From the NCBI GenBank assembly GCA_950097015.1, contig CATNEN010000038.1:3968001-4032000 (forward strand): a stretch of 64,000 bases of DNA, given 5' to 3'. Positions 15,161 to 41,519 of the stretch are shown in pieces. The position numbers and the translations under genes were made by a program. Each line of letters opens with the position of its first letter. Position 1 is the first letter of the stretch. The notes beneath the pieces were generated by a model. The model was not told the origin of the DNA, searched no databases, and saw nothing but the letters and a program-made list of their open reading frames with translations. Source of the DNA: Macrostomum hystrix (taxonomy: Eukaryota > Animalia > Platyhelminthes).

Positions 15161-15284
15161 TATAAATTTCGGGCTGCAGAATGAAGCGTCGAATTGCCTG
15201 ACTCGACCATTTCAGTCGTCTACTAAGCCAGTTTTTTTACTGATTTCATTTTTGTCAAATCAAACGCAAGATCTGCGCGTATCG
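15161..15284 (+). promoter_or_regulatory. TATA box and probable non-coding first exon of the giant gene
   Basis: TATAAAT at 15161, donor G|GTGAGT at 15284/5, acceptor TTTTTTAG at 15518 just before ATG 15528. Confidence 0.55.
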
Positions 15285-15527
15285 GTGAGTTATTCAAGCT
15301 TATAAAACTTTATCGATGCCTTACATTTTTTCTAGGACACGTTTTGTGTCCTGACCCAACGATTTTGGGCACGATTTTGGATGGCAAGTTGAGCATGCCC
15401 ATTTATTTAAACATATAGTTAGGCCTAACGTCCATTTGATTTCGCACCTGCTAACGAATCGCTGTGCACCTACCAGCGCCTAAAAAATTAACTCACCTGT
15501 TAATAATTGCTTTTTTAGAGAAGCAAG

Positions 15528-18500
15528 ATGCGTCTCGCGCTGCTTCTGTTTAGCGCGGCTCTTTGCATCGCCGTCTTCAACCAGGGCGTCGACGCTAATC
15601 GGAATCGCAGGTGAGTTGCGTTCTAAGTACAAGTTCGAAATAATGAGACACGTAAATAACGAGAAGAGAGAACTGCTTAGTGTTGCACAACACTCAGACA
15701 AAATGATTCTCTTTTTAGTAAGATCAAACCCTCTTTCATCTTTCTTCGCAGAAGTATGGACCGCTGCCTAAGTCGCATGCGCAGCAGCATGTCTAAGCTC
15801 CGCAGTCTTAGCTCTAGCCGCAATCGTCGCGTGGCAGCAATGAGCGGCAGCAGGGCTCGGTCTAACTGGGCCCGCAGCATGAGAGTCCGTCGGGTGACTC
15901 GCGCCGCTCGCAACTATCAGATCACGCGAGTGAGCCGACGAGTCACCGTCAGGCGGTTCGGAGCTCGCAAGGTGCAACGGTACGGAGCGTACTCGCGAGC
16001 GACCTGCAGAGCGCTTGTGAGGCGCGTTGCAAAGCGCTCCTCCTACTCGATCTGCAAGCAGTCGAGTCCCCGCTTTGTCTCCTGCACTAGACGGCTCTAC
16101 ATGCGTTGCCCCAAGGGCTACTCGCTTCGGGGCAACATGGCCATGCGGGTCTACTGTCCGAAGCCGTACATACGTCGTGGCGCGACCTGCGTCCGCTACC
16201 GACGAGTTGTGGCTCGCCGAATGGCGTGTCCGCGCGGCTTCACCCGCTACGGCAGCCGCTGCGTGCAGCGTCTGAGCTTAACTTGCGCCGCCGGCTATCG
16301 CGTCTACAAAGGCCGATGCCACCTAGTCAAGTGCCCAACGGGCTATTCCAAGATTGGCAACAGCTGCCGCAAGAGCTGCAGACAAGGCTTCACAATGCGA
16401 GGCTCCATGTGCGTCCGTGTTCGGTACCGATGTCCAAGGAATTTCTATCTGCAAGGCGATCAATGCGTGCGCTATCGCTCGGGATTTGCCAGGTTAGATA
16501 GATTAGTTTTTTTTAAACTTTATCATGTCTAAGTATCACGTTTTACCTACGAGCTTATTTCCAGTTTTGCTTCGATTTATCCTAGTAGCTCCTGAGATTT
16601 TTTATTGCGATATCACCAACTCCAGATGCCGATCGGGCTATCACAGAAAAGGAGATAAGTGCATTCGCACTCTGAAATCCTGTCCACTCAACTACAAGCT
16701 GCAAGGCAAGCGCTGCGTTCTCACCTGCCCAAGCGGTCGCATACCCAGGCGCTCTAGAGATGGTCGTGTTCGCTGTGTGGTTATTATTTCCCGATGCCCA
16801 GTTGGCTACAAGATGAAGCGAATCAAAACACGCCAGGGCTTCAGGTAAGCTTCAGACAGTTAAAAAATTCGTCCCTATAAAAATAACAAGGTTTGATGGT
16901 CGAGTTTCTGAATTTTCACTTCCCACACGCAGGATCCAGTGCACAATGAATGGCGGTAGCTGTGTCAATGGTTTCCGCAAGGTGCGTCGCTACAAACGTG
17001 GCTACGCCTGCGTGAGAATCGCCTGCCCAAAGAACTACGCGAAGCGCGGCAGCTCTTGCGTATACCGATTTCGAATGCGCCGACGCTGCCCTACTGGATA
17101 CACGCTGAATGGAGCCACATGCCAGCGCCTCCGATGCCCAGACGGCTATATCCGACGCGGCAGCCGTTGCACTTACGCCAGATGCCCAAACGGCTACAAG
17201 CGAGCTGGTCGTATGTGCGTCAGGACGCGTTTCGTTGGAAGCTGCCCGTCAGGCTGGGCGCGGCATGGCAGGCTGTGCCGACGTCTGCTCTGCCCTGCCG
17301 GCTACCGAAAGGTTGGCCAGTACTGCATGAGTGAGTCCCAGTGCACTGTTGTCGATCATTTGATTACTGAAATACAAACCTGAAAGAAAAAACTAAGGAA
17401 TCCAAAGAACTTTCTACTTTAAAGGCAGGGTTTCAACTATTTTTCATGAAACTTACTCACTGCTGCAATTTAGACAACTCCTGTCCACCTGGCTTTGTCA
17501 GACGCCGTGGCATGTGCGTAAGAAGTAAGTCTAATCAGATCATTAGGTTCTTATCTGTTTACTTTTAGCCTTAAATATAACTGAAATTACTATTTCATTA
17601 CCAAAACCTGCAGCTCATTGCACACCAGGATACAAGAAAATTGGAAAGCTTTGCATTCGTAAGTACCTCCTTAAGAATGAACCAAATAATCTACAACAAC
17701 TGCTTTTGCCACCATTAACGAAAATAGTTGTGACCACGCAAAACTTTGAAAATATACGGCAGGTGACTGCCCCGCTGGAACCAAGACTTCTGGTCGCTTC
17801 TGTGTAAAGATGAGGTGTCCGAAACGATTCAAGCGAGTAGGAAAGAGCTGTGTGCGAGGTAAGTTCGAGATAATGTGCCAATAAATATGTAGATTTAAGA
17901 CAAACAGTGCACTGCAATCATTCCCATCCAACAGCACAATGCCCGAAGGGTTATACTAAGCGCACAATTCGTAAAAAAGTGTACGTTGGAAGAAAAGTCA
18001 GTGGATCGGAAAAGAAGTGCAGTTGTATCGGGACCAAGACTGACAAAAAGCCGTCGAAAAAGAATTCCATCGACATGGCCTTCGTGGTGGACGTCACTGG
18101 CAGCATGGGATCCGTCATCAGCGCAATCAAGGCCAAGATCAGCGAGGTCATCAACGCAAACTCCGAGTCTCATGTTGTAAGTTAGTTTCCTTTACGAATT
18201 TCGATTATGATTGATGAATTCAAGTTCCGACTTTATCAAAGCATATCTCTCCAATGTTTGCTGCAGGTAGACAAATTCGTGCTGGTTCCATTCGGTGATC
18301 CGAACGTCGGTCCAGTGACCGTCACTCAGGCGAGAACAAAAAGCGCAGTGGTCACTCTGCTCAGAGCATTGAACTCAATGAGAGCGTCAGGTGGTGGCGA
18401 CTGTCCCGAGTTCAGCCACTCCGGCATGTACGAGGCTCTGACGCGAGTGAAGGACAACTCTATCGTGTATGTGTTTACAGATGCGAGCGCGTCATCTCGG

Positions 18501-21500
18501 GACAGGCGGTGAGTTCAAACACTTTCAAGCACTGCTAGCTCATTAAGAAAATCGCTTTATGCTTCCACTAAAAATGGAATTGTTTCCAGAAAGGAGAACG
18601 ACGTCCGAGCTCTCGCTGAGAGAAAGAACGTGCAGCTGAACTTCCTGCTGAGCGGAAATCTATGCGGGCAGCACGACTCGTATCGCAGCTTGTCTCAGTC
18701 GGCCAGGGGCGCCTGGATCAAGATGAGCAGCTCCCAGGCCAGTCGAGTGATGAGCTTCGTCAGCCGAGCGTTGTCACACGGAGCGGCAGAGCTGAGAGGG
18801 ATGAACCGCGACAGTCTGTCTACGTTCGTATCGAAGCGTGAGAAGTGCACCTGTCGCAATGTTCCTCGAGTGACAGCCAAGTACTCATATGTCAACGCCG
18901 TGACATGCTTGAAGAAATCATCAGGAGGTACGTCGAAGCGATGCCCCCGTGGCTTCAGCCTGACGAAGGGACGTTGTGTGAAGCACAGTTCATCGTTGCG
19001 CAGATGTCCGCCTGGCTTCAGCATGCAGACTAGGCGAGAGAAGGTAGTAGCCGGCAAACGGGCAGTCGGCGGATTCGTCAAGACTTGTAAGTGTCTAGAT
19101 GGCAAGCCGCCCTCAACGATCATAAAGAGAGTGATGGACATGGCCTTTGTCGTAGACGTGAGTGGCAGCATGAGCCGAGTGATCAGCGGAATCAAGAACA
19201 AGATCAGAGAGGTCATCGATGCAAACTCGCATTACGGAGTTGTGAGTAGTCTATTGATTTTACTGGCTTAAAACCGCTTCTATTTTATTACTTAATATAT
19301 TCGAAACATTTTAAATGCCACTAGGTGGATAACTTTGTGCTGGTTCCGTTCGGTGATCCGGTTGTTGGTCCACGAATCGTTAGTCGCGCTAACGATTTGA
19401 GATCGCGCCAGGAGCTGCTCGACGCCGTCAATCGCATGCGGGCAGCCGGTGGTGGCGACTGTCCAGAGATGAGTCGCTCGGGCATGTACCAGGCGGCATC
19501 CGTGCTGAAGCCGGGCTCCATCATGTACGTCTTCACCGACGCCAGCGCGTCAATCAGGGACAAAGTGTAAGCAAAACATTTTGAGGGGAGATTTTTTACG
19601 CTTACTTTTTATGCAACCAGAAATTGCTGTCTTAATATTTATGATTTTAATATACAGCACGTGAACTGGATGTTGCCAACAGTTCTTAAATTTGGACTCA
19701 AAGCAGAAAACTTGAAGAAGCAGGTACAAATCTAATTTTAAGTAGTATACGTGTCATACAGCGCCAGCTCATTTATTTTGAGATTTTGCTAAAGTTGACG
19801 TGAAAAACAAGCAAAAAGTTAAACTAAAAATCTTGAATATCACGTTTCAATATACTACCATACTCCATGCAGAACCGAATTAGCGCTTGCCAAGCTAATC
19901 AGCAGTCGAAATATCCAGGTGAACTTCCTAATCTCTGGACACCTGTGCGGACAGCGCACTGCCTACAAGGCTCTGGCATCGAGCAGCAGCGGTTCATGGA
20001 CAAAGATGAGCAACAGCATGTCTGACCGAGTTCTGTCCTTCATCAGCAGGGCCATGGCTCACGGTGCCAGCGGCATGCGCCAACTGAACCGCAGCGGACT
20101 GGCCACTTTTTTGCGGCACCACAACCGCTGTCGGTGCACCCGCAGCCGCCGCACAGTCGAGACCTACAAGTACGTGACCGTGCGCCGGTGCATGAGGCGC
20201 AGCGACTCAAGGACTGACAGTGGCAGCTCTGGTGGCAGCCGTGGACGACGTCGCTGCCCGCCGGGATTCCGGCTAGAGCGCGCTGCCCGTGACGGAAGTA
20301 TCAGATGCATTCGAAAAACTGCAGGTGAGTGTCAGAATATAAAATGGTCAATTTCAGTCTGCTTTTTTTATCATTTTGTAGGACCTAAGACAGTACTTTC
20401 TGACTATGGGCTATGCCAATAAGTTAGTGCAAGCGAATATTTTAGAAAGTGAAAGTTGACTGAAAACTCCCGTATTTAATGGCATTGACAAAACATGGAG
20501 TGAAGAAAACTTTCTTGCCTCTGATTATCGCTCAGTGCTCGAGTACTCAAGATCACCCATAAAAAACAAATTTGTGTTTCTCTCCAATCCTCTCTTAGAG
20601 GTGTACGGTGGGCCAAGACCCAAGCACGAGCCGTTCTATGACTTGTACAAGTCATTACCGGATCGTTTATTGTGTACAACTTATGTGGAATACTTTTCTC
20701 TAGAATAGTGCTGCATTGCAATCAGTAACTAATTGTCTGCAGCTAATGCATGACTTCAGAACTCTGGTTCCATTCTAAGTTAATAAGCACCTGCATTATT
20801 TCAGCGCGATGTGCTGCCGGTATGAAAAGAGCTGGACGAAAGTGCGTTAGTAAGTGCTAGTCACCTTCCTAATAAGTAATTTTTTAACGTAAAAAGGATA
20901 TTTCTATTTCTCAAAAACATACGAAAAAACGAAAAACAGAAAGCTGCCCAGCTGGAACAAAGGCAAACGGAAGCGACTGCGTTCGTGTTCGCTGCTCCAG
21001 GCACTTCCGGCTGTATGGCGACAAATGCATCAGAGGTAAGTTTCCGGAGTCTTAAAAATTATTGTGGCTTGTACTTTAAGTCAATCTTGGAATGATCGCT
21101 CATTGATTTAGTGCACTGCCCGAGAAACATGAAAACCAGGCGAGTTCGATCTCGCGTTCAAGTCGGCACTCGAGTGTCCGGATACACAAAGAAGTGCAGT
21201 TGCATCGGGACCAAGACTGACAAAAAGCCGTCGAAAAAGAATTCCATCGACATGGCCTTCGTGGTGGACGTCACTGGCAGCATGGGATCCGTCATCAGCG
21301 CAATCAAGGCCAAGATCAGCGAGGTCATCAACGCAAACTCCGAGTCTCATGTTGTAAGTTAGTTTCCTTTACGAATTTCGATTATGATTGATGAATTCAA
21401 GTTCCGACTTTATCAAAGCATATCTCTCCAATGTTTGCTGCAGGTAGACAAATTCGTGCTGGTTCCATTCGGTGATCCGAACGTCGGTCCAGTGACCGTC

Positions 21501-24500
21501 ACTCAGGCGAGGACAAAAAGCGCAGTGGTCACTCTGCTCGGAGCATTGAACTCAATGAGAGCGTCAGGTGGTGGCGACTGTCCCGAGTTCAGCCACTCCG
21601 GCATGTACGAGGCTCTGACGCGAGTGAAGGACAACTCTATCGTGTATGTGTTTACAGATGCGAGCGCGTCATCTCGGGACAGGCGGTGAGTTCAAACACT
21701 TTCAAGCACTGCTAGCTCATAAGAAAATCGCTTTATGCTTCCACTAAAAACGGAATTGTTTCCAGAAAGGAGAACGACGTCCGAGCTCTCGCTGAGAGAA
21801 AGAACGTGCAGCTGAACTTCCTGCTGAGCGGAAATCTATGCGGGCAGCACGACTCGTATCGCAGCTTGTCTCAGTCGGCCAAGGGCGCCTGGATCAAGAT
21901 AAGCAGCTCCCAGGCCAGTCGAGTGATGAGCTTCGTCAGCCGAGCGTTGTCACACGGAGCGGCAGAGCTGAGAGGGATGAACCGCGACAGTCTGTCTACG
22001 TTCGTATCGAAGCGTGAGAAGTGCACCTGTCGCAATGTTCCTCGAGTGACAGCCCAGTACTCATATGTCGATTCGGTCACGTGCACCAGACGTTCAGTAG
22101 GCCGATGTCGGCGTGGATACAGGCTTGTGAGAGGAAAATGTGTCAGATCAACCAAGCGGTGTGGACGAGGATACAGGCTTGTGAAAGGAAAATGTGTCAG
22201 ATCCGCCTCTAGATGCGGAAGAGGATACAGGCTATTGAAGGGCAAGTGCGTTGCAGCAGAAGTCGGAGGTAAGTTTTCTGTGAGGTCCGGATTTCTTTCT
22301 TGATTTTTTCGCATCTAACGAGAAAAATGCTTTTCAGTTTCATGTGGCGCATTCCGTTGCACTGGTGGAATGTCTTGCTTAAAGAAGTACCGCTACTCGG
22401 CCCCGGTCAGAGCAGCAGCGAGCAAAGCACACAGCGCCCGTCTAGCCAGCGCCGCTCGGTGGTACAATGCCAGAAGAGCGGCTGAAGCCCGGCGTCATCA
22501 AGTTTTTATTAGAAGTTTCGCAGCTCGTTTCTCAGGTTTGGCCCAGCTTACAACTGATTACAGCTGCCTATAGTGACGATTGCAAATATAAAACCCCTTA
22601 CCTGTTTAGCTATCCGTCTGTCACGTTTCTGCGAACACCAAACCGGGACTCTAAGCTGCCCACGAGGAACGACCATCGACATTGTGAAAGGATTTTACGG
22701 TCGCATGTCGAACAAGCTCTGTAACAGAGGGCCAATTCGGACTACTTCTTGTTCGGCAGGCTCTGCCAACTCGCGAATCAAAAACACCTGCCAGAACAGA
22801 CAGTGGTGTCGTGTGTCTGCGAGCAATAGCGCATTTGGCGATCCCTGCGTTGGAACAATCAAGTATGTGGAGGTCCAGTTCAAATGCAGGGCGTCAAGAG
22901 CTACTGAATCTGCGAAAACTGCAGAGAACGCAAGGTATGCAGCTGCTCTGCGCGCGCTGACAAACAGCTACAACTTGATGAAGGCAAAGTACAATGAGTC
23001 ACTAAAGCGAGTACAGTCCATGGTTAGCAGATGCGCCTTTTCCGCTCCCAGGGCAGGTGAGATATCGTGAAATCACGAAGTTCGTTTCGCTCAATTTAAA
23101 TTATCCTATCGAGTAAAAAGCGGCAGATTAAAACATATTTATTGCTCTGCAGATGCTTGCAAAGCAGTTCGATGCGATCAGGGCACAAAGTGTGCGGTGA
23201 GAAGACAGAGTTTTGCTGGAAAGATGGCTTACAAAGCGGTGTGCGTGAGAGTGCCATCTGAAGGTAAGTTTTTGAAGTTCCATCTAACCCAATGCATGTT
23301 GTTAGACAATGTAACAGACGAATGAAATAATCGAATCTACAGTTCTGTGCGCCAGAATCAGCTGCGGCCGTGGTCGTCGCTGCGTTGTTATAAGTACAAA
23401 GCAACGTATTGGACGGGGGGTAAAAGTTGTCAAGTCCGCCAAATGCCAGCCAAAGAAGGGTAAGAATTGCTTTTTCCATGTGCTGTGCTGAGTCCAGCTG
23501 TCAGTTGCATTGGTCCAGCCGACTTTAAGAAGCACAATAACTGAATTTTATATCTGCAGATCTCTGCAGCACAAAGAGGTGCAGCTCGGGCTCCCGATGC
23601 CGAGTTGTCTACCGATTCAGGAAAGTGGTTCGCCGAGTACGCAGGCGCCAGAGACGATGCTCCTGCAAGAAGGCTGGAAGCAAGCCAGCCAAAGCTGCAG
23701 CTAGAGGGGGCTCCGTTGACATGGCGTTTGTAATTGATACGACTGGCAGTATGGGTCGAGTGATTCGCAGCATCCAGACCAACATTATAGAAATTGTCAG
23801 GGCAAGCAAGGGCACAGTCAGCAGGTTTGTTGTGGCGCCATTTAACGATCCAAAGGTGATTTCTATTCTAAAAAGCACGTTTTCTCTAATCTATATTACC
23901 ACTGATAACAAAAGTCGGTCTTGACTAAATTTATCTAGGCTGGCCCGCTGACCGTCAGCACTAGTGCGAAGCCCATTGTGTCAGCAATCAAGCGCCTCCG
24001 AGCCAGCGGCGGCGGTGACTGTCCGGAGATGGCCATGCATGGTATTCTTGAAGCCGCCAATAAGGTGAACCGCGGCTCCGTCATCTACGTGTTTACCGAC
24101 GCCAGTGCCAAGGACTACGGCCTGCTAAAGAAGGTGATGCGATTATTATCTGAGCTTCTTCTTGAACTAATTCTCCCGAATAATTTGTTCTCGTTCTGTC
24201 TTTTTTTGTAGGTTCGCAATGTAGTAGACAGAAAGGATTTGCAGATGGTGTTTATTGTGACTGGGAGACTGTGCGGAAGCAGCTACCACAATGAGTACCA
24301 GGCTCTCGCTAAGGGTAACGGTCGCGTGGTTACACTGCACAGCAGAAACATCGACAAGGTTTTGAGCTTTATCCGTCGCGCTGTAGCCTTCGGCAGCTCC
24401 CGTCTAAGAAGCATGAACGTATCTGATCTGAGCAGCTATGTTGGAAAGTGCAAGTGCAGAAAAGTAACCCGTGTCATTAAAAAGACGTACAGGCAGTACT

Positions 24501-27500
24501 ATCGGGTGGCAACCTGCACCCGTCGATCTCCGGGTGACTGCTCGTCTAGGAAGTGCAGCAAGGGCTTTAAGTGCGTCACAATCAGAACGCAGTCTTTGCT
24601 TAGTAAAGCTATCACGCGTTGCGTTCGTTCAAGCAGTAAGTTACGAGCTGGATACTTGGTATCGCAAACAAGTAGATTTAATTTACATACCATATTTTCA
24701 TTGAGCCAATAATTAAATTATTTCAACAGACCCGTGCAACAACGTAAAATGCAGCGTCGGATTCACCTGCAAGGTGCGCCACTATGGTCGCGTGTACGTC
24801 AGAGGTGGGCGCAGGTACCGACTAGTCAGATTCAAGGCAGCATGTGTACGAGTCAACAACGGTAAGTGAATTGCAATCTATTAACATTATTACTTTTCGT
24901 GTGTCGATACATTACAAGCTTTGTGGAGCAGTTCGTTTGCCTTTTGTGCCAGATCTTTGCGCCCGAGTTCGCTGCGGACGATTTAGACGCTGCGTTGTTG
25001 CGAATCGGTTTAGCCAGGCGTACAGGACTCAAAGCGCCAAGCGTTACAAACTAATGCTAGCCCGCCGAGCTGCTGAATTAAAAAAGCGCAAGGCTTCCTT
25101 TGAACGGCGGTTTGCTGCTAGATTGAAGGGTCTCACCCAACGAGGATCAAAGAGGGATCGAAAATCAGGTGATTTGGTCACTTACTGGCTTTTTAAACTA
25201 TTATGAGCTAAGAATGTATTATCCGATGCGTTTAATCCGCAACGCATCGGCTACCGTTCAAATTTTTTCAGTTGATAAGCTTAAAAAAAGGCTGAATCAA
25301 CAGCGCAAGTCCTACCTGGCTGTTTTGGATAGACTTTACAAGCGAAGCCTAGCTCAGCTGCGGACTGCATTCAACAGATCCAAGACTATGACCGTTAGGT
25401 GTGTAGGACCAAAGACTGAGAAGAGTAAGTTGGCGATCAACGAAATTAATCATCCTATTCATAGAGGTCCTAAAATCTATACTAGTAAATTTTTGCATTT
25501 TGCAGATCCATGCAGCAGGGTTAAATGTCGCTTAGGCAAGACTTGTACTTCCAAGGTGTCAAGAAGTGGACGGATGACCTCGCGATGTGTAAAGACGAAA
25601 AGTAATTTAAAACGAAACTTACGTAACTGCTTAAACACTTAAAGATTAAACTTCAACTACATAGTACTTCGGGATGCGAAACGATAGTTATTTTTGCCAA
25701 AAACCGTCCCTTCAGATCTTTGCAGTACCAAGAAGTGTCCCAAGGGTACAAGATGCGTCATCAGCAGTGCCGTCACATCAGATGGTCGTAAATATAGGGA
25801 AACCAGAAGAAGGCAAGGCCAAAAGTATGTGAAAGCTCGCCACGCTCTGAGATCCAGGTATACAGCCACATACCGCGCCACCAAGTCTACACTAAGAAGC
25901 GCTAAGAAGTCGTTCAGAAGAGCCATCGTGACAGCTAAAAAGTCTAAAAGAGCTTCAACAATTCGAGCACTGAAGACTTCATGGAGGTCGCAGCAGAAGC
26001 GTCTTAGAGCAAGTCTCCGTCAGCTAACAAGTCGCTATATTTTAGCGACTCGGGCGCTCCGAGCGGCATACAAGCGTAACTTACTCAAAGTGTCCAAGAC
26101 ATACAAAAAGCGTCAGCTGGTCAAGAAGTTCGCCCAGTGCCGAGCCGATCCATGCGCCAGAGCCAAGTGCAAATCCGGCTACAGATGTTCTGTTGTGCGA
26201 CGTTACACCAAAAAATTCGCATCCTACGTCCAGCACAGACGTCTCGTCATGCAGGCATTCTTCAAGAAAGTGCGTAGTCTGCGAAAAGCGCCCACCAAGA
26301 AATCTCGGGGCAGGCGCGTTAGCTATCAGGAGTACAGAAAGATGGCCAGTAAAGCCGGAAAATCCCTATCGCAAAATTTGAAGGCACTACGCAAAAAATA
26401 TGGAGAATCAACGTTCAAGAATAGAGTGAAAGAAGTTGCAAGATGCATTCCAAGACCACAGCGTAAGTGATGTCTTTGATAATCGCATTAGAATAAAGCA
26501 TTAAAAGGAGCTATTTACAATTTCAGGAACATGCCTTCATAAGAAGTGTGGGGCTGGAACTAGATGCGTTGTGCGGAGTGTTCCGACTTGGTGGTACAAG
26601 TTATACCGAAAAAGTGTCAAGCGAGCCTACCTAAGATTTAAGACTCGATTACAAACTGTTGTCGCTCGACTGAGTCGTCAAGGTCGCAGTAGCAGGCAGA
26701 AACTCAGCAGGCGTGTAAGATCCAAGGAAAGAAGAGGCGGCAGACGACTGAGATCCAAGGGAAGACGAGGCGGCAGACGTGTGAGATCCAAGGGAAGACG
26801 AGGCGGCAGACGACTGAGATCCAAGGGAAGACGAGGCGGCAGACGTGTGAGATCCAAGGGAAGACGAGGCGGCAGACGACTGAGATCCAAGGGAAGACGA
26901 GGCGGCAGACGACTGAGATCCAAGGGAAGACGAGGCGGCAGACGACTGAGATCCAAGGGAAGACGAGGCGGCAGACGTGTGAGATCCAAGGGAAAACGAG
27001 GCGGCAGACGTGTGAGATCCAAGGGAAGACGAGGCGGCAGACGTGTGAGATCCAAGGGAAGACGAGGCGGCAGACGTGTGAGATCCAAGGGAAGACGAGG
27101 CGGCAGACGACTGAGATCCAAGGGAAGACGAGGCGGCAGACGACTGAGATCCAAGGGAAGACGAGGCGGCAGACGTGTGAGATCCAAGGGAAAACGAGGC
27201 GGCAGACGTGTGAGATCCAAGGGAAGACGAGGCGGCAGACGTGTGAGATCCAAGGGAAGACGAGGCGGCAGACGTGTGCGATCCAAGGGAAAACGAGGCG
27301 GCAGACGTGTGAGATCCAAGGGAAGACGAGGCGGCAGACGTGTGCGATCCAAGGGAAAACGAGGCGGCAGACGTGTGAGATCCAAGGGAAGACGAGGCGG
27401 CAGACGACTGAGATCCAAGGGAAGACGAGGCGGCAGTCAACAAAAATCCAAGGTTAACAAGCGAGCCAGTCGTCGAATTAAGACAGCCAAGTCTCGTCTG

Positions 27501-30500
27501 TGGGGTCGGTTTAAGAAAGCCGTTAAGCGCTATCGCAAAAAGTTTAGAGCCAGTCAAAGCAAGATCTCCGCTCGCCGATGGAAGAAGTACTCTCACTCAA
27601 GCCAAAAGGTTCGTGCATCTGCCTTCCGACGCATACGAAGCGAAGCTCAGAAATATGCAAGACGAGTCAATAAGCTCAAGGGTTGGTTTTCTAGGAGAAT
27701 AGAAATCTACAAGAAGCGCATGGAGGCAGTGCGGAAGATGTCTGGAGCAAAGAGAGTAAAGGCCAGAGCTGGCCTTCTGAGGTTCTACCAGCGGACAATG
27801 AAATTGTACAGAGAACGGCTCACGGTTGCGACAAAGAAGTACTATAAACAGCGAAGTAGAATGCTGAAGAAACTTGAAAAGCGGTTGTCTCGCGCCCGAG
27901 GAAAGACCAGAGATCTACGAAAAAGGCGCTTTGTGAGACGTGCTATCTGCATGCCCATCAACCCGTGCTCGGCCAAGAGATGCCATCAAGGATTCGTCTG
28001 TCGAGTGCGCCGTGTCCGAAGCGGCAGAAATCCAAGATTTAAGAAGATTGCGCGCTGCGAGAGATATGGTAGGAAAACTCGCGTTCTGACTCAATTGGAA
28101 AATGCGAAGATACAATGCTTAAATGTATTCGTATACACATGTACACATGTACATCTAGGGAAATTATGAACTATTGGTATTTATGAAACTTTGTAATCAC
28201 ACAATGAGTATACTAGTACTTCTGCCGGCTAGACCATTTAAAGCCGAAGCTGAAAACCGAAAATACTAAAAATCTGTAGCGAAATATGTTTCTTAACAAA
28301 GGCTAAGCGTCTAATTATTAGCATTATATTGCATTATCCACTTAAAGATCCGTGCAAGAATATCAAGTGCTCACGTTCAAGCCGGTGCGTAGTCAGACGA
28401 ACAGCCACAAAGGAACTCCAGGCTTATCGCTGGTACGCCCGCAAGTCTAGCCGACGCCACAACAAGGCAGTAAAGAGTCTGCGAAGGAACATTCGCCAAC
28501 GTGTGCGCAAGATTAAAAGGCATGCGATCAGGCGTTACAAACGACAGGTGCGGACTGTCCGTCGCAGACTTAGTGGCCGCCGATTTGCTAGTCGCATTGG
28601 AGGCCTGAAGCAATCTCTGGTCAGAAGATTGCAGCGCTGCAACAGGCGGGCGCGTAGAGATTACAAGCGCGGTAAAGCTGCCCTCAGACGTAGGCTCAGG
28701 CGAGTTCTGAAGCGCCACTTCCGGCGATACCTGCGGCACCATCGACGCTATTCAGTGAGAGCTGTGTGCGTCGCTGCTGAACAAGGTGAGTAAATGAAAA
28801 AATTGGAAATGAGGAATGAGCTAGAAGTAAATCCATGAGAAATATCTCGTTACTAGGAGAATTCATTGTAAAAAGTACACTACTTTATCGACCAGAAGAA
28901 CCCCAAATAATAGTTGTACAACAATGTCATATCGAATATATCGCGTATTTTAGTGATAATTATTCGTGTGCTTCTCACTTTTCCGACGGTTTTTTCGATG
29001 CCTTCTAGATCCATGCAGCAAGAAGCGTTGCCCCAGCGGGTCCAGGTGCATTGTACGCCGACAGCGAGCTGCACAGTACAAGCGATTCGTGGCCACCAGA
29101 CGGCGCTACCTCAGGAGTTACCGCATGACCCGAATCCACAAAACGCGACGCGTGCGGGCCGCCTTTAGAAGGAAACTGCAGAAGTTGCTGCTGAACTACA
29201 AGAAGCTGGGAGCTTTTAAGTTCCAGCTTGTAGCAAAGTGTTCAAAGAAAGGCAAGTCATGAATAAATTGCAAATTTCTTTTTAAGTGAGCATGTACCTC
29301 GCAGTTTCAAATAGTAAATAAAATTAGAAAAACGTATTGTGACTCGTAAAACTTTTAGCCTATTGTCCAAGAGGATACTTCCGCAGTGGAAGCCAATGTG
29401 TCCGATACGTTGAAGTCTGTCCCGAGTCCTACGTCCGCATTAGAAGACGTCGCGGATACCGCTGCATCAGTAAGTCTGTTTAAGATAAATTTTGCCACTT
29501 TTCAATGAAACATTGTGATGAGAAAAAGTTTTCAATGCCTCGAATTCTGACTTCTATCCTCCAGGGTATTACAGAGTTTGCCCGGCTGGATACATGCACT
29601 TCGACAATCTCTGCGTGAAGTCGTGCCCACCAGGAACTAGAAGGTCGTCAAAGCGAGCATGCAAAGGTAGAGTCAAACGGTCTTTACAGAATTTTCATTG
29701 ACGCAAAAATTCCCGATTATTATGACCACTTTTATTTTAGTCGTAAAGTCATGCAGCACATTCCTGAACAATACAAAATGTGTGAGGGCTTGTCCGAAGA
29801 ACACAATCCCTGTTGGCCGGCGTTGCCGAAGTAAGTCTTGTTAAATCGAAGAAAAAACGATTGTTAAAGTACATTTTTCTTTCTATTGAAACTTTCAAAT
29901 GGTTTCTATTTTAGGATGTCCGAAGGCAGCGATCGCTCGAGATGGGAAGTGCCTTGGTACGCTGGGATAAATGTCAATTCAGAACTATTGTTGTTACAGA
30001 GCCTATATCCATGCATTTTGAAATTGACTACGCTTTACTTAGGAGATAAAAAATGATAGTTAGAAGCAAGCGTACAACAAGGCATTGCATTTCAGTTCCC
30101 AGAATCAACTGCCGCTCGGGATATCAGCACGGACAGCAGTGTGTAAAGAGCTGTCCCAAGGGTTTTTACGCGTTTGGCAGTCGATGCACAAGTAAGTCGC
30201 GTTATTCAATCTTCATAAAAGAACATAAAGACAAAAAAGAAACAAAAAATGAATCTCTGTTCTCGCAGGAGTGCGTTGCCCATCTGGATCCAAGGCTCGT
30301 TTCAGTCATCGCAGACGAAGAGTTCTCTGCATCCGTAAGCAGTTTCTCAGTGAAATTTATGTCTTTATGTCTCATTTTGTCTTGGGATATACCAATTCGC
30401 AAGAGGACTGCGGGCACTGGTAATCCTTTTGTTGACAGTACCCGCAGTTAGTGAGACACTTTTTTGTTTTTTATTTTTTGCTTTGTTAGCAGATGAACAT

Positions 30501-33500
30501 TAATGGGTAAAATTTCAGGCAAGCCATCATGCAAGAAGGGTGCTGTGTTCTATGCTGGCTCCTGCCACGCCAAGTGCCCCACTGGCACCCGCCAACGCGG
30601 CTGGTTCTGCCTGCGCCAGTGTCGCTCCGGCCTGGTGCGCGTCGGCTTCCGCCGTCAGCGCTGCATCCGGCCCTACTGCCGCAATCGCTTCCGCCTAGGC
30701 CGCAGAGGCTGCGTTCGCAAGTGCCCGATCGGTTTTGTGGGCGTTCGACGCACCTGCAGACGCGTGAGACTGACCTGTCCGGTAGGATACGCTCGCCTTG
30801 GTCGCGCACTCTGCCTCAAAGACTGCCCGATTGGCTTCGCCAAGCGCAATGGACACTGCGAGTACAACGCATGCGCCAAGGGTACCTTCCGCTACCGAGG
30901 TACCTGCATGAAATCCTGCCCGGCTGGTACCATACGACGGGGCAGACACTGTTTTAGTAAGTTTTAAGTGCATTGCTATTCCTTTGGCAGTGATAATAAC
31001 CTATAGTAAATGCACTTCAGCATTTGAAATCAGGCTAAATAATTGCGACTGCTAAAAATTTCAGGAAAGAGTAATTGCAAATTTGGCCGCTTTGACTACA
31101 GCAAGCTGTGTTTGAGAAAGTGCCCGCCTGGTCACTATAGGAGCTACTCAACTCGAACATGTGTTCGTAAGTAAATTCTGATTATCTCAAAACTTAAAAC
31201 TTTTATAGTGTTGCATGCAAAGGTAAGCAAAATGTTTTATACATTTTTATATGATCTAAAGATTTATTGAACTTGTCATCCGGTCCATTAAATGTAATAT
31301 GATGAAAACCGCTTTTAAGGTATCAAGCGCTGCTCCAGTGGCATGATAAGATTCAGGCGACTCTGCCTAAAATCTTGCCCGCTGGGATTCGAGAAAGCCA
31401 GGCGCACCTGCAAGCGAAGATCCACCTGTCGCGACGGGTACGCGTACAAGGGCGCATGCCTGCCTCTTGGTTCGAACTGTCCTGCCAGCACTGTGCTCAT
31501 CAGGGGATCATGCGTGCGAGCCCGTGAGTTTATTTATAATTCTTCTCATTGTTCAACTCAAGTCTTGCATCAATTTTTTTTAGTTAGGACGAGGTCAGTC
31601 CGCCATAATTTTTATTGAAAGTGCATTATTTTTCTGCAGCCGGTCTCTGCGTTTCCGGCCGTCTTCTTCTGATCCGCTCCAGCGGCGCTCGCTCCTGTGT
31701 GCGGCTCTGCCCGCGTGGCTACATGGCAGACAAACGTCGCCGAACCTGCACAATGTCTCACTGTCCTAGTGGAACAGTGCGCTATCGCAACACCTGCAGA
31801 AATACCTGCCCCAGGGGATTCCGCGCTGATAGCAACAGACAATGCGTCAAAGACAAAGCGGTCGTTAAGTGCACTGGAAAGACATTTGCGTTCAGACGGC
31901 GATGTGTTAGCAGCTGCCCTGCTGGTTTCGTGCTCCGGGCACTGACACGGCGCAGAAGGACCATCCGCTATTGCCGCCGATCCAACAAGTGCAAAAAGGG
32001 CAAAATCCTCATTTTCACTCGTCATAGAGTCAGTCGAAGCAGAAGGTACCGCTACAGATCAAAGTGTGTGGACTCAAAGAAAGCCTGCAAGACCGGGTAC
32101 CGGCTAAGAAGGAAAGTTATAAGGTTCATGCGGCTAGGCAGGAGAGTGCGCAGAGTTCTCCGCATCTGCACTCCATCGCGAAACAACTGTGCAAAGGGCC
32201 TCTTCAGGTACGGAGGTGCCTGCAGGAAGGACTGTCCAAAAGGCATGAAGTCTGTGATCGTACGAAGATCTTCGAGAATGATACGAACATGTGCACCGCG
32301 TATGCTTCTGGAACTAACCCAATAAATATTTTCCTATATAACATTAGGCAGCGTCTGACATTTATTTTCATCATTTACTCACAAAAAGGTTGCGGCAAGC
32401 TGTATGCCATTGGCATGAAGTGCGTTCGCAAGTGCCCGGATGGCTTCCGAGCTACCAAATTCAGTCGCATCAGATTTTGCAAAAGAAGTGAGCCATTATG
32501 ACTAAAGCTCATTGCATATACGAGCGTATTATGTGCTGTTTCTTATCGACTGGCGAAAGTTTGTCAATATACTGTTTTATTTCAGCGTGCAAGAAGGGCG
32601 AGTTTTCGTTTAGAAGAAGCTGCGTCAGACGTTGTCCTCGCGGCTACAGACTGCGCAAACTACGCATCTACTCAGAGCGCTTCAAGCGTGTTATTTCCAG
32701 AATCTCTTGTCAGCAGCAAAGTGAGTACACCCCAATGTTTCTCTTATGCTGAATTCTTAACTGATTGCAAGTAATCAAATCTGAAATTTTAAGGGTGCCG
32801 TAGAGGTTATAGATTGGTCTACCAGCTTCAAAGAAGTGGTAATGCGCTTGCCTTAAAACTGAGAGGCATCTGTCAGAGAAGTAAGCCTATTTCCCAATGA
32901 AATTTTATCACCTTTCAAAATCAGCAATCTCTCTATTGATAAGCTGCATTCACATTTTAGTAAAAGCAAAGACTTGCAGACATCCGAAAGCATTGTTCTA
33001 CGGACGCTGCCGAAGCGCGTGCCCAGCGGGATACTATAGGCGAACAAGAAATGTCCGAGGGCGAAGATATGGCTTCTGTTTGCCTACAAGGAAAACAGTT
33101 CTGTGCCGTAGTAGACGATGCAAAGCTGATCAAATTTGCGTTGTGCATCGCCGATCGCGCATTTTCAGAAGCAAAAAAGGAGCCTTTAGACGAGCCATAC
33201 ACAGAACAGCATGCGTGCCTAGATGTAAGTACAGATAATAGACAAAAATTCATCACCTTATGCAAGAAGTTTCTGACAGAAAGCTTTATCCTCTGACGAA
33301 AATCTCGTTTTAGATTGTAAGGCTGGAACGTACCGCTACAAAAACAAATGCATCAAGAGCTGTCCCCGCGGATACTCTATGAAGACTTACAAACGCACCA
33401 GAGTATTCAAGGGTCGGAAGCACTCCGTTACTCTGAGACGATGCACCAGAAAGGCTTGCAAGTATCCTCAGGCGAGATACAGCGGCCGCTGTGTGAAGAC

Positions 33501-36500
33501 ATGCCCGAAGTCCTACATGATGAAGGTCTTTAGCATCCGCTTCCGTTACAGAAAGACAAGCTACGTTAGGCGTTATGCCGTGTGTCGGGAAGATCTCTGT
33601 ACGAAGGTGCGCTGCTCTTCAGGAGAAAAGTGCATTGTTAACAAAGTGATGGCCGGCAGGCGCCGTACAAAGCAAGTAGCTGCCTGCGTGAAGAATCAGG
33701 TTGATCCGTGCTCACGCATGACTTGCCGGCGGGGCTACAAGTGCAAATCCGCGTCTGACAGGAGCGGAAGCAAAAGGGCAAGGTGTGTGAGAATAGCACC
33801 CAACTGCCGCGGTGGCTTGGTCATCTTCCGACGTCGATGCCGCCGCAGATGTCCAAAGCGGTATCGCATCATCAGCAAGCGAGTTGGAGAGACACTCCAG
33901 AGAATATGCGTCCGTGACGCTTGCTCCAAGGGTCGATACTTTTTATTCGATAGATGCACAAGCCGGTGCCCGATCGGTATGAAGTCTCGACAAAAGTTGT
34001 ACACAAAGACGTACAGTTTTAAATATTGTCAGCCAAAGCATTGCAAGGGTCGCAGATTCAGGATCGGGCGCCGTTGCGTGAAGTCCTGTCCAGCTGGGTA
34101 CAGACGCCGCTACTACAGAACGCGCCGCGGATTGAGCCGGTACTGTCTTTCCTATGTCTGCAAAAAAGGCTACTATAAACTGGGTCGACGCTGCGTACGA
34201 CGATGCGGCAAGAACTACCGGTTGAGGACATACACGAGAGGCGAACACACCTTCGGGGTCTGTGAGCCGGTTGAGTGTGGCAAGAGTTTTGTGTTTGTTG
34301 CTGGAAAGTGCAGACCAGCCCTGAAGGGTTGCTACGATCGAGTGTACAGTTGCAGGGCCATGGCAAGAAGAAAACGCTGCTCAAGCAAACTTGTGAGCTA
34401 TTTGTGCCCAGTTGCGTGCAAGAAGTGCAAGCCCAGCAAACGAAAGTTCTGCACTTGCACCAGCTCTGGTGACCCGCACTATCGAACCTTTGACGGCAAA
34501 TGGATCACATTCCAGGGAAAATGTAAATATCTTTTGGCGCAGTCAACACTTAAAAAGGGTTCGAAATGCAACTTCGAAGTGACAGCCAAGAACGAAGTCC
34601 GTGGAAAGGCTAAAACAGTGACCTGGACCAGGTTTGTCGAGATCAGTTTCCATGGCATCAAGATTCGTTTGCACCAACGACGTCGAGTTTTTGTCAACGG
34701 AAAGAGAATCAGACGACTGCCAATATCATTCTATCCTGATGGCAAGAAAATCAGAATTTATCACAGCGGCAGAAATGTTGTTGCCGAGTCAAAGTATTGC
34801 GGCATGCATCTTCAGTTCAATGGTAAATCGATCGCTGAGTTGCATCTCCCACGGTCACGATATGCCGGAAAGGTACAGGGAATTTGCGGAAACTGCAACG
34901 GAGATCCAAAAGACGATCTGAAAACACGCGACGGCAAAGATGTGTCTAAGCTTGGAGCGCAAGGCTATGCGAAGATTGGTCAATCTTTTGCCGTTCCCGA
35001 TGACTCGTCTAAGAAGTACAGGTGCGAAGTTAGGGCGGTCCCGCCAGCAAACAAGATCTGCTCTAGCGCCATGATGAAAAAGGTTGCCACCAATGAGTAC
35101 TGCGGTTTGATTTTGGATAAGAGTGGTCCATTTAGTCAGTGCATTAATTCTAAGAAAGTTGATTTCGCAGGAATTTTCAAGAACTGCCAGTTTGACGTGT
35201 GCGAGTACAAAAGCCCTAGAAATCGCCGAAGGGCCGTCTGCCAATCGCTTGAGTCCCTCTACAACGCTTGCCTGGCTGCTGGCTTCAGTGTTAAATGGCG
35301 ATCCAGAAGCTTCTGCCCGATGCGCTGTGGTCCAAACGCAGTCTACAGTCAGAAGGCTAGCGCCTGCCCCAGAACTTGCTCGGATATTGGTCGCCGCCGA
35401 GTGTGCCGCCTACCAGATCGCGACGCCTGTGTATGCAAGCCAGGATTTGTCCTGAATGGAAGAACGTGCGTCCCGGAGAAGAGTTGCGGCGATGTTGTTC
35501 CCATCGACGTAGCATTCGTCGTGGAGGGAACCGATGATATTAGCACCGATGAGTTCGAGGCTCTGAAGAGCCTGGTTGTGAAGCTTCTTACAAAATATCG
35601 ACTGTCATTGGAATCCGTCCGACCTTCACTAGTTGTGTTTGGTAGAATCAGCCCGACTGTCAGCCTGTTTAGCGAGCATCAGGACAAGACTGAATTCATG
35701 GAATTTGTTAGGAAGCTGAAGAAAACCGGTGGTTCAACCGATAATCTGGAAGCTGCTCTACGAGTAGTAAACAAAGTATTGATGCAAGCGATTGGCGGCT
35801 TTAGGCCAGAAGTTCCCAAGTATGTGATTGTGCTGAAGAAAAGTTCTGTTCCTGCAACTTCTGACAAGCCAGTTCGCAAGCAATTAGAAAAGCTTAAGGA
35901 ATTAAAGGTCAGAGTCGTAGTTGTCAACTTGCCTAAGACAGGAAAGTCCAGTGTTGATGCAACCATGAGCGGACTCACTATCATCCAAGCTGGCATGCCG
36001 CCATTTACATCTATCCCAGCCATTTCCAAGGAGCTAGAGTCAACAGCCGGCTGTCCATTGGGCTTCAGAATGGAGAAAGATGGCTGCGTTGATGTTAACG
36101 AATGTACAGCCTCTGTTCCAGCATGCCACAGTGATGCCACATGTGTGAACCTGCCAGGTAGCTTCGTGTGTCTCTGTGGTGACGGTCTGCTGCATGACAG
36201 AGCCAGAGGATGCGTGACACCTGAGAAGCCGAAGGCGAGTTGTCCTGAAGAGCCCAAGTGCGACAAGGGCTTCTATTATGACAAGACAGCAAATAAATGT
36301 ATGGATATTGACGAATGCAAGGAAAATCCATGCCTCGGAGATCAAGCAACTTGCGTGAATCTCGCTGGCAGCTTCAAGTGTGGTTGTCCTGCCGGATTTG
36401 AGTACAATAAGTTCTTTGGCTGCGTGGACATTGATGAGTGCAAGGTAAAGAAGGACCCCTGCATGGGAGCTGGAAAGTGCATCAACATGCTCGGTTCCTA

Positions 36501-38866
36501 CAATTGCTCATGTGACTCAGGTTACTTGTACAAGAGCGGAGTTGGGTGCGAAGACATTGATGAGTGCGCATCGAACAGTACAAACACCTGCAAGGGCGGC
36601 TCAAAGTGCGTAAATACCGCGGGCTCCTTCAACTGCTCCTGCGCCAAGGGCTATCGATACTCCAGCGAATCCTGCGTGGATATCGACGAATGTGCTGAGA
36701 ATAGTAAATTGTGCGACGCGTCGGCAATGTGCGTGAATCAAAAGCCTGGCTATAAGTGCCAGTGTAAGCTTGGCGACAACTGGATGTACAAGGCAGGCGA
36801 AGGCTGCGTCCCAGACGAAAGCAAGGGAATGACAGAGCGCAAGGTTGACTTCTTCTTTTTAATCGACGTCTCGGACAAGCTGAAGGATTCAATTAGGGAC
36901 ATTCAGGGCTTCATCAACGGTCTGCTGCAACAGTTTAACACAAAGGAGGTGGCAGGTCTCAGCGCCCGCGTCACCGTGGTCCTCATGGGAAAGAAGGGCG
37001 AAGCTAGTGTGGCCCTCAGCCAGTCCCCTCTTGTGGGAATCGCAGAGAAAGTCAACGCGCTCACACCCCTGGGCGGTGATACAAATCTGCTCCAGGGCAT
37101 GAAGATGGTCGCTGAGGAGAGAAAGAAGGCAAGGCGAGACAGCACAGTGGTTGTCTTCCTTATTACCGCCTCCAGCATTCAGGCAGGTGATGGAAGTTTG
37201 ACTGAGATCAGGCGATATTCTGATGACTTCAAGTCAACAGGCAAGTTCTTTACGGTGCAAATCAGCCCGAGCGGTAACCCGGCGGAATGGTCGACCCTAT
37301 ACACCAGCGCAGAGATCAGCCTCTTTGTGACCGTCATCAGATCATCCGAGATGCTGACAATCTACAAGCTTTTCTATCTGCGAGTTTATCCTCTAATCAC
37401 GTGCCCAGCCGGCTTCGTAAAGAATGACGGCCTCTGCCAGCTGCAGACAGCCACAGTTAAATACTGCAAGACGGACACTGGGGAGCTCAGACCCGTGGGA
37501 ACCACCTGGCAAGAAGAGTGTTCGCAGTTTAAATGCACTGATAGCGGCGTGGAGGTGCTGTTCAGGAAGTGTCTGGGCTACGATGGCCTCTGCTACTCAA
37601 CTGAGGAATACTTCCCCTGCACTCAGGTGACAGGATCGCTTAACTGGAAGTGTCGATGCAGGTGCGTTTATTGTGTGGACGATTGACATAGCATCATGCC
37701 TACATCGACCTAACAAGTATCCTTATAAACCCTAAGTTTTGCCTTCTAAAATCTTATTTCAGGCTCAACTCGGTGACTGACAAAGTGACACGAAAGAGCT
37801 TCCAGTCCCTGTCATACCAGTCCATCGCTGCCGCCAACGAGACCATGATGACAGACAAGGGCATCGCCTGTGTGTTCCCGTTTAAATACCAAAACAAGTG
37901 GCATTACAGCTGCGATCTCTACGAAGGAAGATACTGGTGCTCATTCCATCGCTACCACGAGACAGGCTCCTGGGGCTACTGCAAAATCAAGGCTTCCACA
38001 AACAGGTGTACTGACCCGTTCGATTCGTCAAAGATTTACGTGGAGGGAGATCGGTGGAACCACGGTTGCAACGTCATGGAGTGCACCCACACTGGACTGA
38101 GGAGAATACCAAGTAAGTTTGCTCGGCCATGACGCACTAAAATGTGTTTTGTCACGTAGTTTACTTATCGAGAAGTTACAATTAAGCTTTCCCTTCTCAC
38201 CAACAGAGTGCGAAGCATCGGACAAGACTTGTAAGGACTTGAACACGGACAGCTACTCCTGCCGCATTGGTGACAAGCAGCACTCGAACTGCCTCTGCGT
38301 ACAGGATTCCTCCGGCTGGGGCAAGAACGAAATCGTTAGCGGCGACAAGGCCACTGTCATTACGGGCTCCGGCGGCGCCGTAGTCAGCATGTGTGTTGAC
38401 ATCAGCAGCGGCAAGAAGTACGAACAGGGACAGGAATGGACCACCTCATGCTTCACCTACAAGTGCACAGCTACTGGCGGTCAGCTGCTGCAGGCCAAGT
38501 GCCAGCAGAAGGATGGCACTTGTAGAAACATCGGTGACAAGGGCTTTGACTGCATGATCAGCGACAAGGCTCGGGCCAACTGCGAGTGCAGCAAGGACTC
38601 CTCCGGCAATCCAATGCTTGTCGCCACCTTTGAAGGTAGGAAGATTCAAAATCAGCTGTCTTATTTACTTCTCAACATGCATAGACAAAAATATAGTCGT
38701 TAAATTTTTGTTTTATCGAATCAACATCTCAGGTCGCCTAATCACGGAGGTGTACAAGAAGACCGAGGTGAGCACATCGCTTGCAATGATTGCAAAGAGC
38801 GCCAAAAAGACAATCACCAGTGAGGTGTCTTCTTCGTCGTCTAGCTCGGCTGGCACTTCCAAGTGA
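15528..38866 (+). CDS. Giant secreted Arg/Lys- and Cys-rich multidomain protein (~50 exons, ~5,900 aa est.); adhesive/cohesive extracellular-matrix-like
   Basis: Signal peptide MRLALLLFSAALCIAVFNQGVDA (15528-15610). Consecutive + strand exons, mostly phase 1. Domains: CPxGY repeats, 4 VWA7/hemicentin-type vWA, SUEL lectin, follistatin-N-like modules, (SKGRRGGRR[L/V]R)22, furin-like Cys repeats, ShK, vWD, C8, TIL, vWA, Ca-EGFs, vWA, FN2, VWC-like. Stop at 38866, AATAAA at ~39003. Confidence 0.88.
18068..18840 (+). other. vWA domain 1 (hemicentin/VWA7 type), 3 exons
   Basis: IDMAFVVDVTGSM..FVLVPFGDP..GGGDCPE..VYVFTDAS..QLNFLLSGNLC. Confidence 0.9.
19133..20120 (+). other. vWA domain 2 (hemicentin/VWA7 type)
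   Basis: MDMAFVVDVSGSM..GGGDCPEMS..MYVFTDAS. Confidence 0.9.
21188..22069 (+). repeat. Near-identical internal duplicate of 18011-18893 (vWA domain 3, including both introns)
   Basis: Exons and introns match by eye except for a handful of substitutions. Confidence 0.92.
22630..22887 (+). other. SUEL/rhamnose-binding (Gal_Lectin) domain
   Basis: CEHQTGTLSC..IDIVKGFYGR..C..C..C..C.VSASNSAFGDPCVGTIKYVEVQFKC contains the YGR, DPC and KY-like motifs. Confidence 0.9.
23715..24445 (+). other. vWA domain 4 (hemicentin/VWA7 type)
   Basis: VDMAFVIDTTGSM..PFNDP..GGGDCPEMAM..IYVFTDASAKD. Confidence 0.9.
26714..27436 (+). repeat. Coding 33-bp tandem repeat: ([V/L]RSKG[R/K]RGGRR) x22, protamine-like
   Basis: In-frame within exon ~26527-28068; 22 units counted from the translation. 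Confidence 0.95.
34330..34428 (+). other. ShK-like domain
   Basis: CYDRVYSCRAMARRKRCSSKLVSYLCPVACKKC has the six-Cys ShKT pattern. Confidence 0.8.
34450..37400 (+). other. vWD-C8-TIL-vWA-(EGF-Ca)n-vWA block within a 4.35-kb exon (~33314-37661)
   Basis: GDPHYRTFDG..GICGNCNG (vWD); TIL CGPNAVY..CPRTC..CVCKPGFV; repeated DIDEC..C.N..GSF.C.C; two vWA domains with degenerate MIDAS. Confidence 0.92.
37850..37985 (+). other. Fibronectin type II domain
   Basis: GIACVFPFKYQNKWHYSCDLYEGRYWCS..GSWGYC. Confidence 0.85.
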
Positions 38867-41315: not shown

Positions 41316-41519
41316 TGGGGGGTTAGCATAAATTATCGAGGGCGTAGCATGAATTTTTGTGGGGTAGTTTGATTCATCAAAGGGGTAGCATGAATTATCG
41401 GGGAAGAGCATGAATTATCAGGGCGTAGCATATATTTACGAGGGGGAGCCTGCGTTATCGTGGGGAAACCATAAATTGAGGGGGTAGCATAGATTATAGA
41501 GGGATTAGCAAGCTTTGTC

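Follow-up and report, generated by a model that had tools for sequence, protein, structure and literature searches.

Temporary adhesion in the flatworm genus Macrostomum is currently modelled with two proteins, ap1 and ap2. The first combines a C-type lectin, vWD, C8 and TIL domains and 7–18 EGF domains with GRK repeats on both sides and contains no vWA domain (PMC6410801, PMC8621496), and charge-based cohesion is the mechanism proposed for it. Here we describe a gene of Macrostomum hystrix that belongs to a second class of giant polycations in these animals, one of different architecture whose two paralogues are conserved across species. It lies in a stretch of 64,000 nucleotides (positions 3,968,001 to 4,032,000 of contig CATNEN010000038.1, forward strand; GCA_950097015.1) that was analysed as a whole and is called the window below; positions are those of the window. 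A preliminary description of the locus, made from the DNA alone, had given vWA as part of the ap1 layout, which was an error, and had nevertheless proposed a giant secreted protein distinct from ap1.

The gene lies on the + strand, from the ATG at 15528 to the stop codon at 38864–38866. In the curated model one 5′ non-coding exon is followed by 50 coding exons, whose coding sequence of 17,703 nt specifies a product of 5,900 amino acids and is free of internal in-frame stops. Of the 49 introns 48 have GT-AG ends and one has GC-AG ends, 37 are in phase 1, and the median length is 91 nt. The start, the end, the number of about 50 exons, the phase-1 bias and the length of about 5,900 residues given in the preliminary description were all reproduced. 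The 5′ non-coding exon (15233–15284, + strand, at least 52 nt) is placed by an RNA contig whose unaligned 52-nt end, 5′ of 15518, maps to 15254–15283, and is accompanied by a GTGAGT donor at 15285, an acceptor AG at 15517–15518 and a TATAAA at 15161. Coding exon 1 (15528–15610, + strand) supplies the start codon and the signal peptide, MRLALLLFSAALCIAVFNQGVDA, and an RNA contig joins it to 15752 across the intron 15611–15751. With AATAAA at 39003 and 39018, 3′ of the stop, the transcribed span runs from 15233 to about 39020.

Logan contigs were aligned to 15400–21399, and the runs were taken as RNA because their contigs are spliced. Within this interval contigs from four runs of two studies show 14 GT-AG introns, leading from exon 1 to exon 15 (which begins at 21112); in all, 15 GT-AG joints, belonging to the first 15 introns of the gene, are confirmed by RNA contigs. 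Farther downstream, seven runs contain a share of 0.72–0.73 of the sampled words of 28.2–38.1 kb; the gene model predicts about 0.71–0.76 if exons alone are present, so that the observed share is consistent with spliced expression. Beyond 21.4 kb the model was built by frame-preserving intron chaining, by alignment to the M. lignano proteins P0001, P0026 and P0171 and by direct reading of the sequence, and there it is supported by the frame, which stays unbroken, by canonical splice sites and by collinearity with a paralogue on contig C7 and with M. lignano proteins. Ab initio exon chains, of 46 exons at first and then 43, contained wrong junctions and were replaced with the help of the RNA joints, M. 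lignano homology and sequence reading. The GC-AG intron, with its donor at 29252 (AAG/GCAAGT), is required for the frame and for the match to P0171, and chaining through GT donors only misses the exon at this intron; the junctions of exons 48–50 were fitted to P0001. From 15.5 to 38.9 kb the stop-to-stop frames of the + strand have a dense coding content and are basic and rich in Cys. We conclude that 15528–38866 is a real, expressed single gene, and the earlier claim of one gene for a giant secreted polycation is borne out by the unbroken frame, the RNA joints as far as exon 15, the collinear paralogue and the M. lignano models.

Protein searches were done exon by exon, and the composition of the whole protein is the sum over exons. 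Lys plus Arg (K+R) make up 24.5% of the residues, Asp plus Glu (D+E) 5.2% and Cys 6.4%, giving about 1,450 Arg/Lys residues, about 380 cysteines and a net charge of about +1,144. Up to the VWD domain the blocks contain 18–38% K+R and 1–7% D+E, the EGF block has a net charge of −11, and neither the VWA block nor the C-terminal one departs much from neutrality, in agreement with the Arg/Lys/Cys-rich front and neutral-to-acidic end first described. The signal peptide, also recognized in that description, is the sole hydrophobic stretch found in a hydrophobic window scan of the protein, which is therefore predicted to be secreted and to have no membrane anchor. Domains scoring over the Pfam cut-offs are VWA_4 (four copies), SUEL, VWD, C8, TIL, VWA, EGF_CA (five copies), VWA_2 and fn2; the four VWA7-type domains, SUEL and FN2 that had been proposed as additions thus stand, whereas the ShK and furin-like assignments remain sub-threshold.

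The protein reads from its N terminus as follows, all features being on the + strand. Exons 2–7 (15752–17858), whose six introns are confirmed by RNA contigs of three runs, encode Arg-rich Cys repeats of the type C-P-x-G-[YF]-x3-G-x-C, which amount to about 540 residues with 26% K+R and 8.8% Cys and have weak Pfam matches only. Three VWA_4 (VWA7-type) domains follow in exons 8–17 (17935–22268; PF25106, E down to 1.7e-21), at about 18075–18790, 19140–20020 and 21252–21970, each spread over three exons and set between small Cys modules, with introns confirmed by RNA up to 21111. An 883-bp stretch at 18011–18893 is 99.1% identical, introns included, to 21188–22069, which points to a recent event, either duplication of VWA_4 copies a and c or gene conversion between them, and the RNA contigs merge these two copies into one (a jump back of 3087). 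Exons 18–19 (22338–23056) contain a Cys module with an Ala/Arg-rich insert that bears a canonical SUEL (rhamnose-binding lectin) domain at about 22651–22887. This domain matches PF02140 over its full length (E 1.5e-20) as well as PDB entry 5h4s (E 3.6e-52) and CSL3 (E 6.6e-29), and in alignments to the latter two it retains the CE, YGR and GDPCxGTxKY motifs together with the eight-Cys fold of the family. Its sugar-binding residues are presumably those described for CSL3.

Two short follistatin-N-like four-Cys modules, identified by a motif scan, and the fourth VWA_4 (about 23721–24400; PF25106, E 4.1e-10) occupy exons 20–24 (23153–24635), an arrangement that is collinear in the C7 paralogue. 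The most strongly charged part is encoded by exons 25–32 (24730–29251) and consists of four-Cys modules with the motif [DN]-P-C-x4-C-x2-G-x2-C ... C and K/R-rich inserts of tens to about 460 residues; it comprises about 1,190 residues with 38% K+R and a net charge of +430, and a Pfam search assigned these modules to no family, returning weak spurious matches only. An AlphaFold2 model of exon 29, taken as a single exon and without an alignment, folds the first insert (126 residues) into a helical hairpin with a tight turn between helices 18–75 and 79–143, both with a predicted local distance difference test (pLDDT) score above 90; the small Cys frames are not resolved in this model, which supports a helical-hairpin reading of the K/R inserts for one module only. 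A tandem repeat at 26707–27436 (33 nt, 22.1 copies, 95% matches) encodes 11-residue GRRVRSKGRRG units of GRK-type low complexity.

Furin-like Cys repeats extend over exons 33–46 and the start of exon 47 (29359–34305), about 1,200 residues with 28–30% K+R and about 10.7% Cys, with introns that are all in phase 1 and exon ends that were curated against P0171 and P0001. Their matches to Furin-like and Furin-like_2 are sub-threshold (24.8 bits for a cut-off of 26.8), as is that of the ShK-like six-Cys motif at 34327–34437, which aligns to PF01549 over its full length with 18.7 bits (cut-off 20.9). The unit at 34456–35487 comprises VWD with one GDPH motif (113.7 bits, E 1.3e-32), C8 (56.8 bits, E 2.8e-15) and TIL (36.5 bits, E 5.5e-9), in this order and all over the Pfam cut-offs, as in proteins of the zonadhesin and mucin type. 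It is succeeded at 35506–37284 by a VWA domain, five EGF/Ca-EGF (calcium-binding EGF) domains (36103–36786) and a second VWA (VWA_2/VWA_3), likewise assigned with Pfam, and exons 48–50 (37763–38866) add FN2 (37869–37982; fn2, E 7.7e-8), a Cys-rich C-terminal region and a Ser-rich tail. A motif scan finds 37 R-x-[KR]-R motifs in the protein, which together with the GDPH motif would allow proteolytic processing.

The gene is not unique. The paralogue in the same genome lies on the minus strand of contig C7, at about 11.348–11.379 Mb, and its large exon has an open frame of 1,448 amino acids that is 62% identical to that of the gene described here (66% over a VWD-C8-TIL query). In an exon-by-exon search 45 of the 50 exons have a counterpart there, largely with their order preserved. 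Departures from this pattern are the SUEL exons and exon 24, which match elsewhere, and a few matches to other modules, and the copy numbers of VWA_4 and SUEL differ. The order of signal peptide, Cys repeats, VWA_4, SUEL, K/R modules, furin-like repeats, VWD-C8-TIL, VWA, EGF, VWA and FN2 is collinear within the family. M. lignano has proteins that are collinear with the gene from SUEL to the C terminus, and these are its best protein matches (62–83% identity).

The M. lignano relatives, which are deposited in UniProt and NCBI as uncharacterised, divide between the two copies. PAA67297/A0A267F293 (P0001) is 81% identical to the C7 copy over the large exon and 62% to this gene, and A0A1I8JL43 (P0171) and the unaccessioned SUEL-type model P0172 are 68–71% identical to the former and 54–58% to the latter; by these values PAA67297, A0A1I8JL43 and P0172 are orthologues of the C7 copy, and A0A1I8I5M9 (P0026, 61–63% to this gene) was placed with them on its similar identity. 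PAA53193 (P0056) and A0A1I8GF43 (P0043), with 83% and 77% identity to this gene, are fragments orthologous to it. This split implies that the duplication predates the separation of the two species. The relatives are partial gene models, all of which lack the N terminus; P0171, P0026 and P0172 unite SUEL, K/R modules, furin-like repeats and the VWD-to-FN2 portion in a single protein, and P0171 reaches from SUEL to the C terminus. In the literature that we searched, by accession and for Macrostomum with SUEL or cement-gland, these proteins are neither named nor studied. The basic N-terminal 2,400 residues of P0171 found M. lignano matches only among 5.8 billion clusters, with a tool limited by length and word so that absence elsewhere is not implied, and outside flatworms the searches recovered relatives of the VWD unit and the EGFs only (zonadhesin-like, fibrillin-like and similar proteins).

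Orthology to Mlig-ap1 (GenBank MH586844) was assessed by means of its published mass spectrometry peptides rather than the full ap1 sequence. Of eight such peptides none matches the window within three mismatches, nor any of the M. lignano family members exactly. The ap1 peptide YSFNTPSCQK does occur exactly, and a second one nearly exactly, in a VWD-TIL-EGF locus at 6.87 Mb on contig C39, where the separate ap1 orthologue lies. Identity with Mlig-ap1 was rejected on these peptide results and on the different layout of the core, as the preliminary description had anticipated. Its further suggestion that the protein might be undescribed also holds for the literature searched, in which no description of the protein family was found. 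The two genes constitute an undescribed Macrostomum family of old paralogues that is separate from ap1.

Evidence at the protein level comes from Dataset S2 of PMC6410801, which according to the text of that paper is mass spectrometry of adhesive footprints. It lists the product of an unnamed 'galactose binding lectin' transcript (3,863 amino acids, isoelectric point (pI) 12.1) with nine peptides, three of which are exact in P0171, P0026 or P0001; eight map to the C7 paralogue with one or two mismatches and the ninth with three. Since these peptides cover the VWA_4, SUEL and furin-like parts of the C7 paralogue, one M. lignano transcript spans those parts. The peptides of a second entry (1,639 amino acids, pI 12.5, with SUEL) are one to three mismatches away from both paralogues, and the text of PMC6410801 leaves both basic lectins undiscussed. 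The class is thus detectable in published footprint samples, a hint, and the only experimental one, that the family is present in deposited material and may belong to an adhesive, mucus or cocoon secretion as the preliminary description suggested. Small basic VWA7-like proteins (442–675 amino acids, pI 11) appear in the M. lignano footprint table as well.

What might such a protein do? The reading that we favour, at about an even chance of being correct, is that it forms the cohesive matrix of a secretion deposited outside the body, for example footprint material or the mucus of trails. Disulfide-linked polymers of the extracellular space are typically assembled from VWD-C8-TIL units and Ca-EGF arrays, and here the VWD-C8-TIL unit, the Ca-EGF rod and the cysteines could yield disulfide-linked multimers. 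The Arg/Lys residues, many of them displayed on long helical hairpins in small four-Cys modules and on the GRK-type tandem repeat, would bind, through their charge, such polyanions as sulfated or carboxylated glycans and charged surfaces, while SUEL, the four VWA7-type domains, the two VWA domains and FN2 could add specific cross-links. Multimerisation, polyanion binding, and the type of secretion and its gland are what we infer; the data above establish the gene structure over its first 21 kb, its expression, the domains it encodes, its paralogy and its distinction from ap1. Rhabdites classically stain with acidic dyes, suggesting basic protein, and epidermal or rhabdite mucus is accordingly one option. 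A nuclear, protamine-like role was rejected in view of the signal peptide and the extracellular domains.

Several points weigh against this proposal and the model beneath it. The footprint sheets also list tubulin, actin, ribosomal proteins and many others, so that presence in them is no proof of secretion, and the footprint peptides that match best come from the orthologue of the C7 copy and not from that of this gene. The metal ion-dependent adhesion site (MIDAS) motifs of the VWA domains appear degenerate by eye. Finally, read-based confirmation of introns ends at about 21.4 kb, the introns from there to 38.9 kb having been derived from frame and homology, and some donors in this part are weak (GTTTGG at 22536, GTGATT, GTAGGA).

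Among the alternatives, a secretion of the egg shell or cement glands with which eggs are coated or glued would make good sense of the SUEL domain, SUEL lectins being classic egg proteins; the footprint peptides, however, come from material left behind by crawling adults, no expression data were found for the family, and we consider this role unlikely. Even as a constituent of mucus or egg cement, the protein would be the first matrix candidate for such secretions in Macrostomum. It might instead be a third component of the duo-gland adhesive system, made in the adhesive gland cells and, together with ap1, linking ap2 cohesively to the worm. The protein has ap1-like ingredients (GRK-type repeat, vWD-C8-TIL, Ca-EGF), the family has as many footprint peptides as Mlig-ap1 (nine each, on the same sheet), and heparin blocks attachment (PMC6410801), an effect to which any polycation would be subject. 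Yet all 10 adhesive-organ transcripts from expression screens are ap1 or ap2, and their double RNA interference abolishes the adhesive vesicles (PMC6410801). With cellular proteins contaminating the footprint sample in addition, we regard a duo-gland role as distinctly unlikely.

An internal extracellular-matrix protein, or a defensive mucus protein (antimicrobial and armed with a lectin) instead of a structural glue, appears improbable to us. VWA, Ca-EGF and FN2 are typical of matrix, polycations and rhamnose-binding lectins are often found in innate defence, and the VWA7-type domain is hugely expanded in the genome, with at least 52 matches, but known basement-membrane proteins have neither a net charge near +1,100 nor 22 GRK-type repeats. 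That two or more separate genes were wrongly joined is scarcely credible, for although 21.4–28.2 kb lies outside all RNA checks and the M. lignano database models are all fragments (349–4,266 amino acids), there is no internal signal peptide or hydrophobic segment, the introns are canonical and frame-preserving throughout (median 91 nt), the peptides of one M. lignano transcript extend from VWA_4 to the furin-like part, and the conserved order of parts in the two paralogues together with M. lignano models such as P0171, which span SUEL to the C terminus, argues strongly for one gene.

The favoured reading of a deposited cohesive matrix can be taken a step further. As a speculation to which we give little weight, the gene and its paralogue could be overlooked structural components of temporary adhesion or trail material that carry their charge on rigid hairpins in follistatin-N-like four-Cys modules (a 'cationic bottle-brush') beside a working rhamnose/galactose lectin. 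In that case the two paralogues would be needed for some of the heparin-sensitive cohesion that is at present attributed solely to ap1. More generally, should the family turn out to belong to what the worm deposits, both the model with two proteins and the interpretation of the heparin and cation experiments would have to be revised, and the display of charge on Cys-framed helical hairpins would be a new design idea for bio-inspired glues.

Elsewhere in the window, two open frames at 44250–46890 (+ strand) contain motifs of trypsin-like serine proteases (IAGG..., WVISAAHC-type) and have the appearance of secreted protease genes arranged in tandem, 3′ of the giant gene. By eye, the start of a neprilysin/ECE-like peptidase is found at 48348–48983 (+), a Na/Ca-K exchanger-like membrane protein at 51200–54200 (−), a TPR-like protein at 58650–60350 (−) and a homocysteine S-methyltransferase-like gene at 61430–62700 (−); these four are unrelated to the giant gene. 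Minisatellite arrays, which remain open in several frames on both strands, lie at 6940–7380, 8640–9320, 9760–10300, 11110–11670, 13990–14350, 41340–42340, 51800–52310, 54130–54840 and 58250–58860, and the region from 40 to 44 kb is AT-rich (GC 36–38%).

In the rest of the genome, a six-frame search with PF25106 gave at least 52 matches, mostly single-exon domains, with clusters on contigs C1, C24, C39, C7, C11 and C37. Further SUEL pairs lie just upstream of the C7 paralogue (C7:11386534–11388230, −) and beside an open frame of 2,960 amino acids (C1:24444882–24446039, −), which suggests more polycationic lectin genes. At C11:1818813–1822070 a VWD exon adjoins a long tandem array, one frame of which gives KSRRLIGQTRLIN..., and this is possibly another repeat-rich secreted giant. 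At C11:3454510–3457980 a VWD exon comes after basic Cys modules of the C-P-x-x-Y type, with two VWA_4 domains just upstream (C11:3451881–3453840), and this locus is possibly a smaller relative with a similar layout of VWA_4, Cys repeat and VWD.

Compared with described proteins, the VWD-C8-TIL unit is about 35–40% identical to those of zonadhesin, the IgGFc-binding protein and the gel-forming mucins and shares their GDPH motif, but these proteins lack the basic character and possess numerous VWD units alongside mucin or MAM domains; the best matches outside flatworms are in fact generic zonadhesin-like proteins (33–39% over the VWD unit). The sea-star protein Sfp1 is closer in kind, being a Cys-rich cohesive footprint protein that, as summarised in PMC6410801, unites a galactose-binding (SUEL-type) lectin with vWD, C8 and Ca-EGF domains; the preliminary description had named SUEL lectin and vWD for it. 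Sfp1 differs, however, in that it is not polycationic and is without VWA7-type domains, FN2 and K/R modules. Among the matches listed none is named as an echinoderm footprint protein, and it is the domain types only that are shared. With ap1, from the same genus, the protein shares the most: both are giant (over 5,000 amino acids) secreted polycations with a GRK-type repeat, one vWD-C8-TIL unit, Ca-EGFs and a high Cys content. In place of a C-type lectin (Lectin_C has no Pfam match in any exon) this protein has SUEL far upstream, and it adds four VWA7-type domains, two VWA domains and FN2. In the core of ap1 TIL is followed by the EGFs, 7–18 in number, whereas here it is followed by VWA, five Ca-EGFs, VWA_2 and FN2; and whereas GRK regions flank the core of ap1, this gene has one 22-copy GRK-type repeat, upstream only, and a neutral C terminus without a K/R region. 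Most of the charge is carried by Cys-framed modules and putative helical hairpins and not by low-complexity repeats as in ap1. The two proteins probably work alike, by charge-based cohesion.

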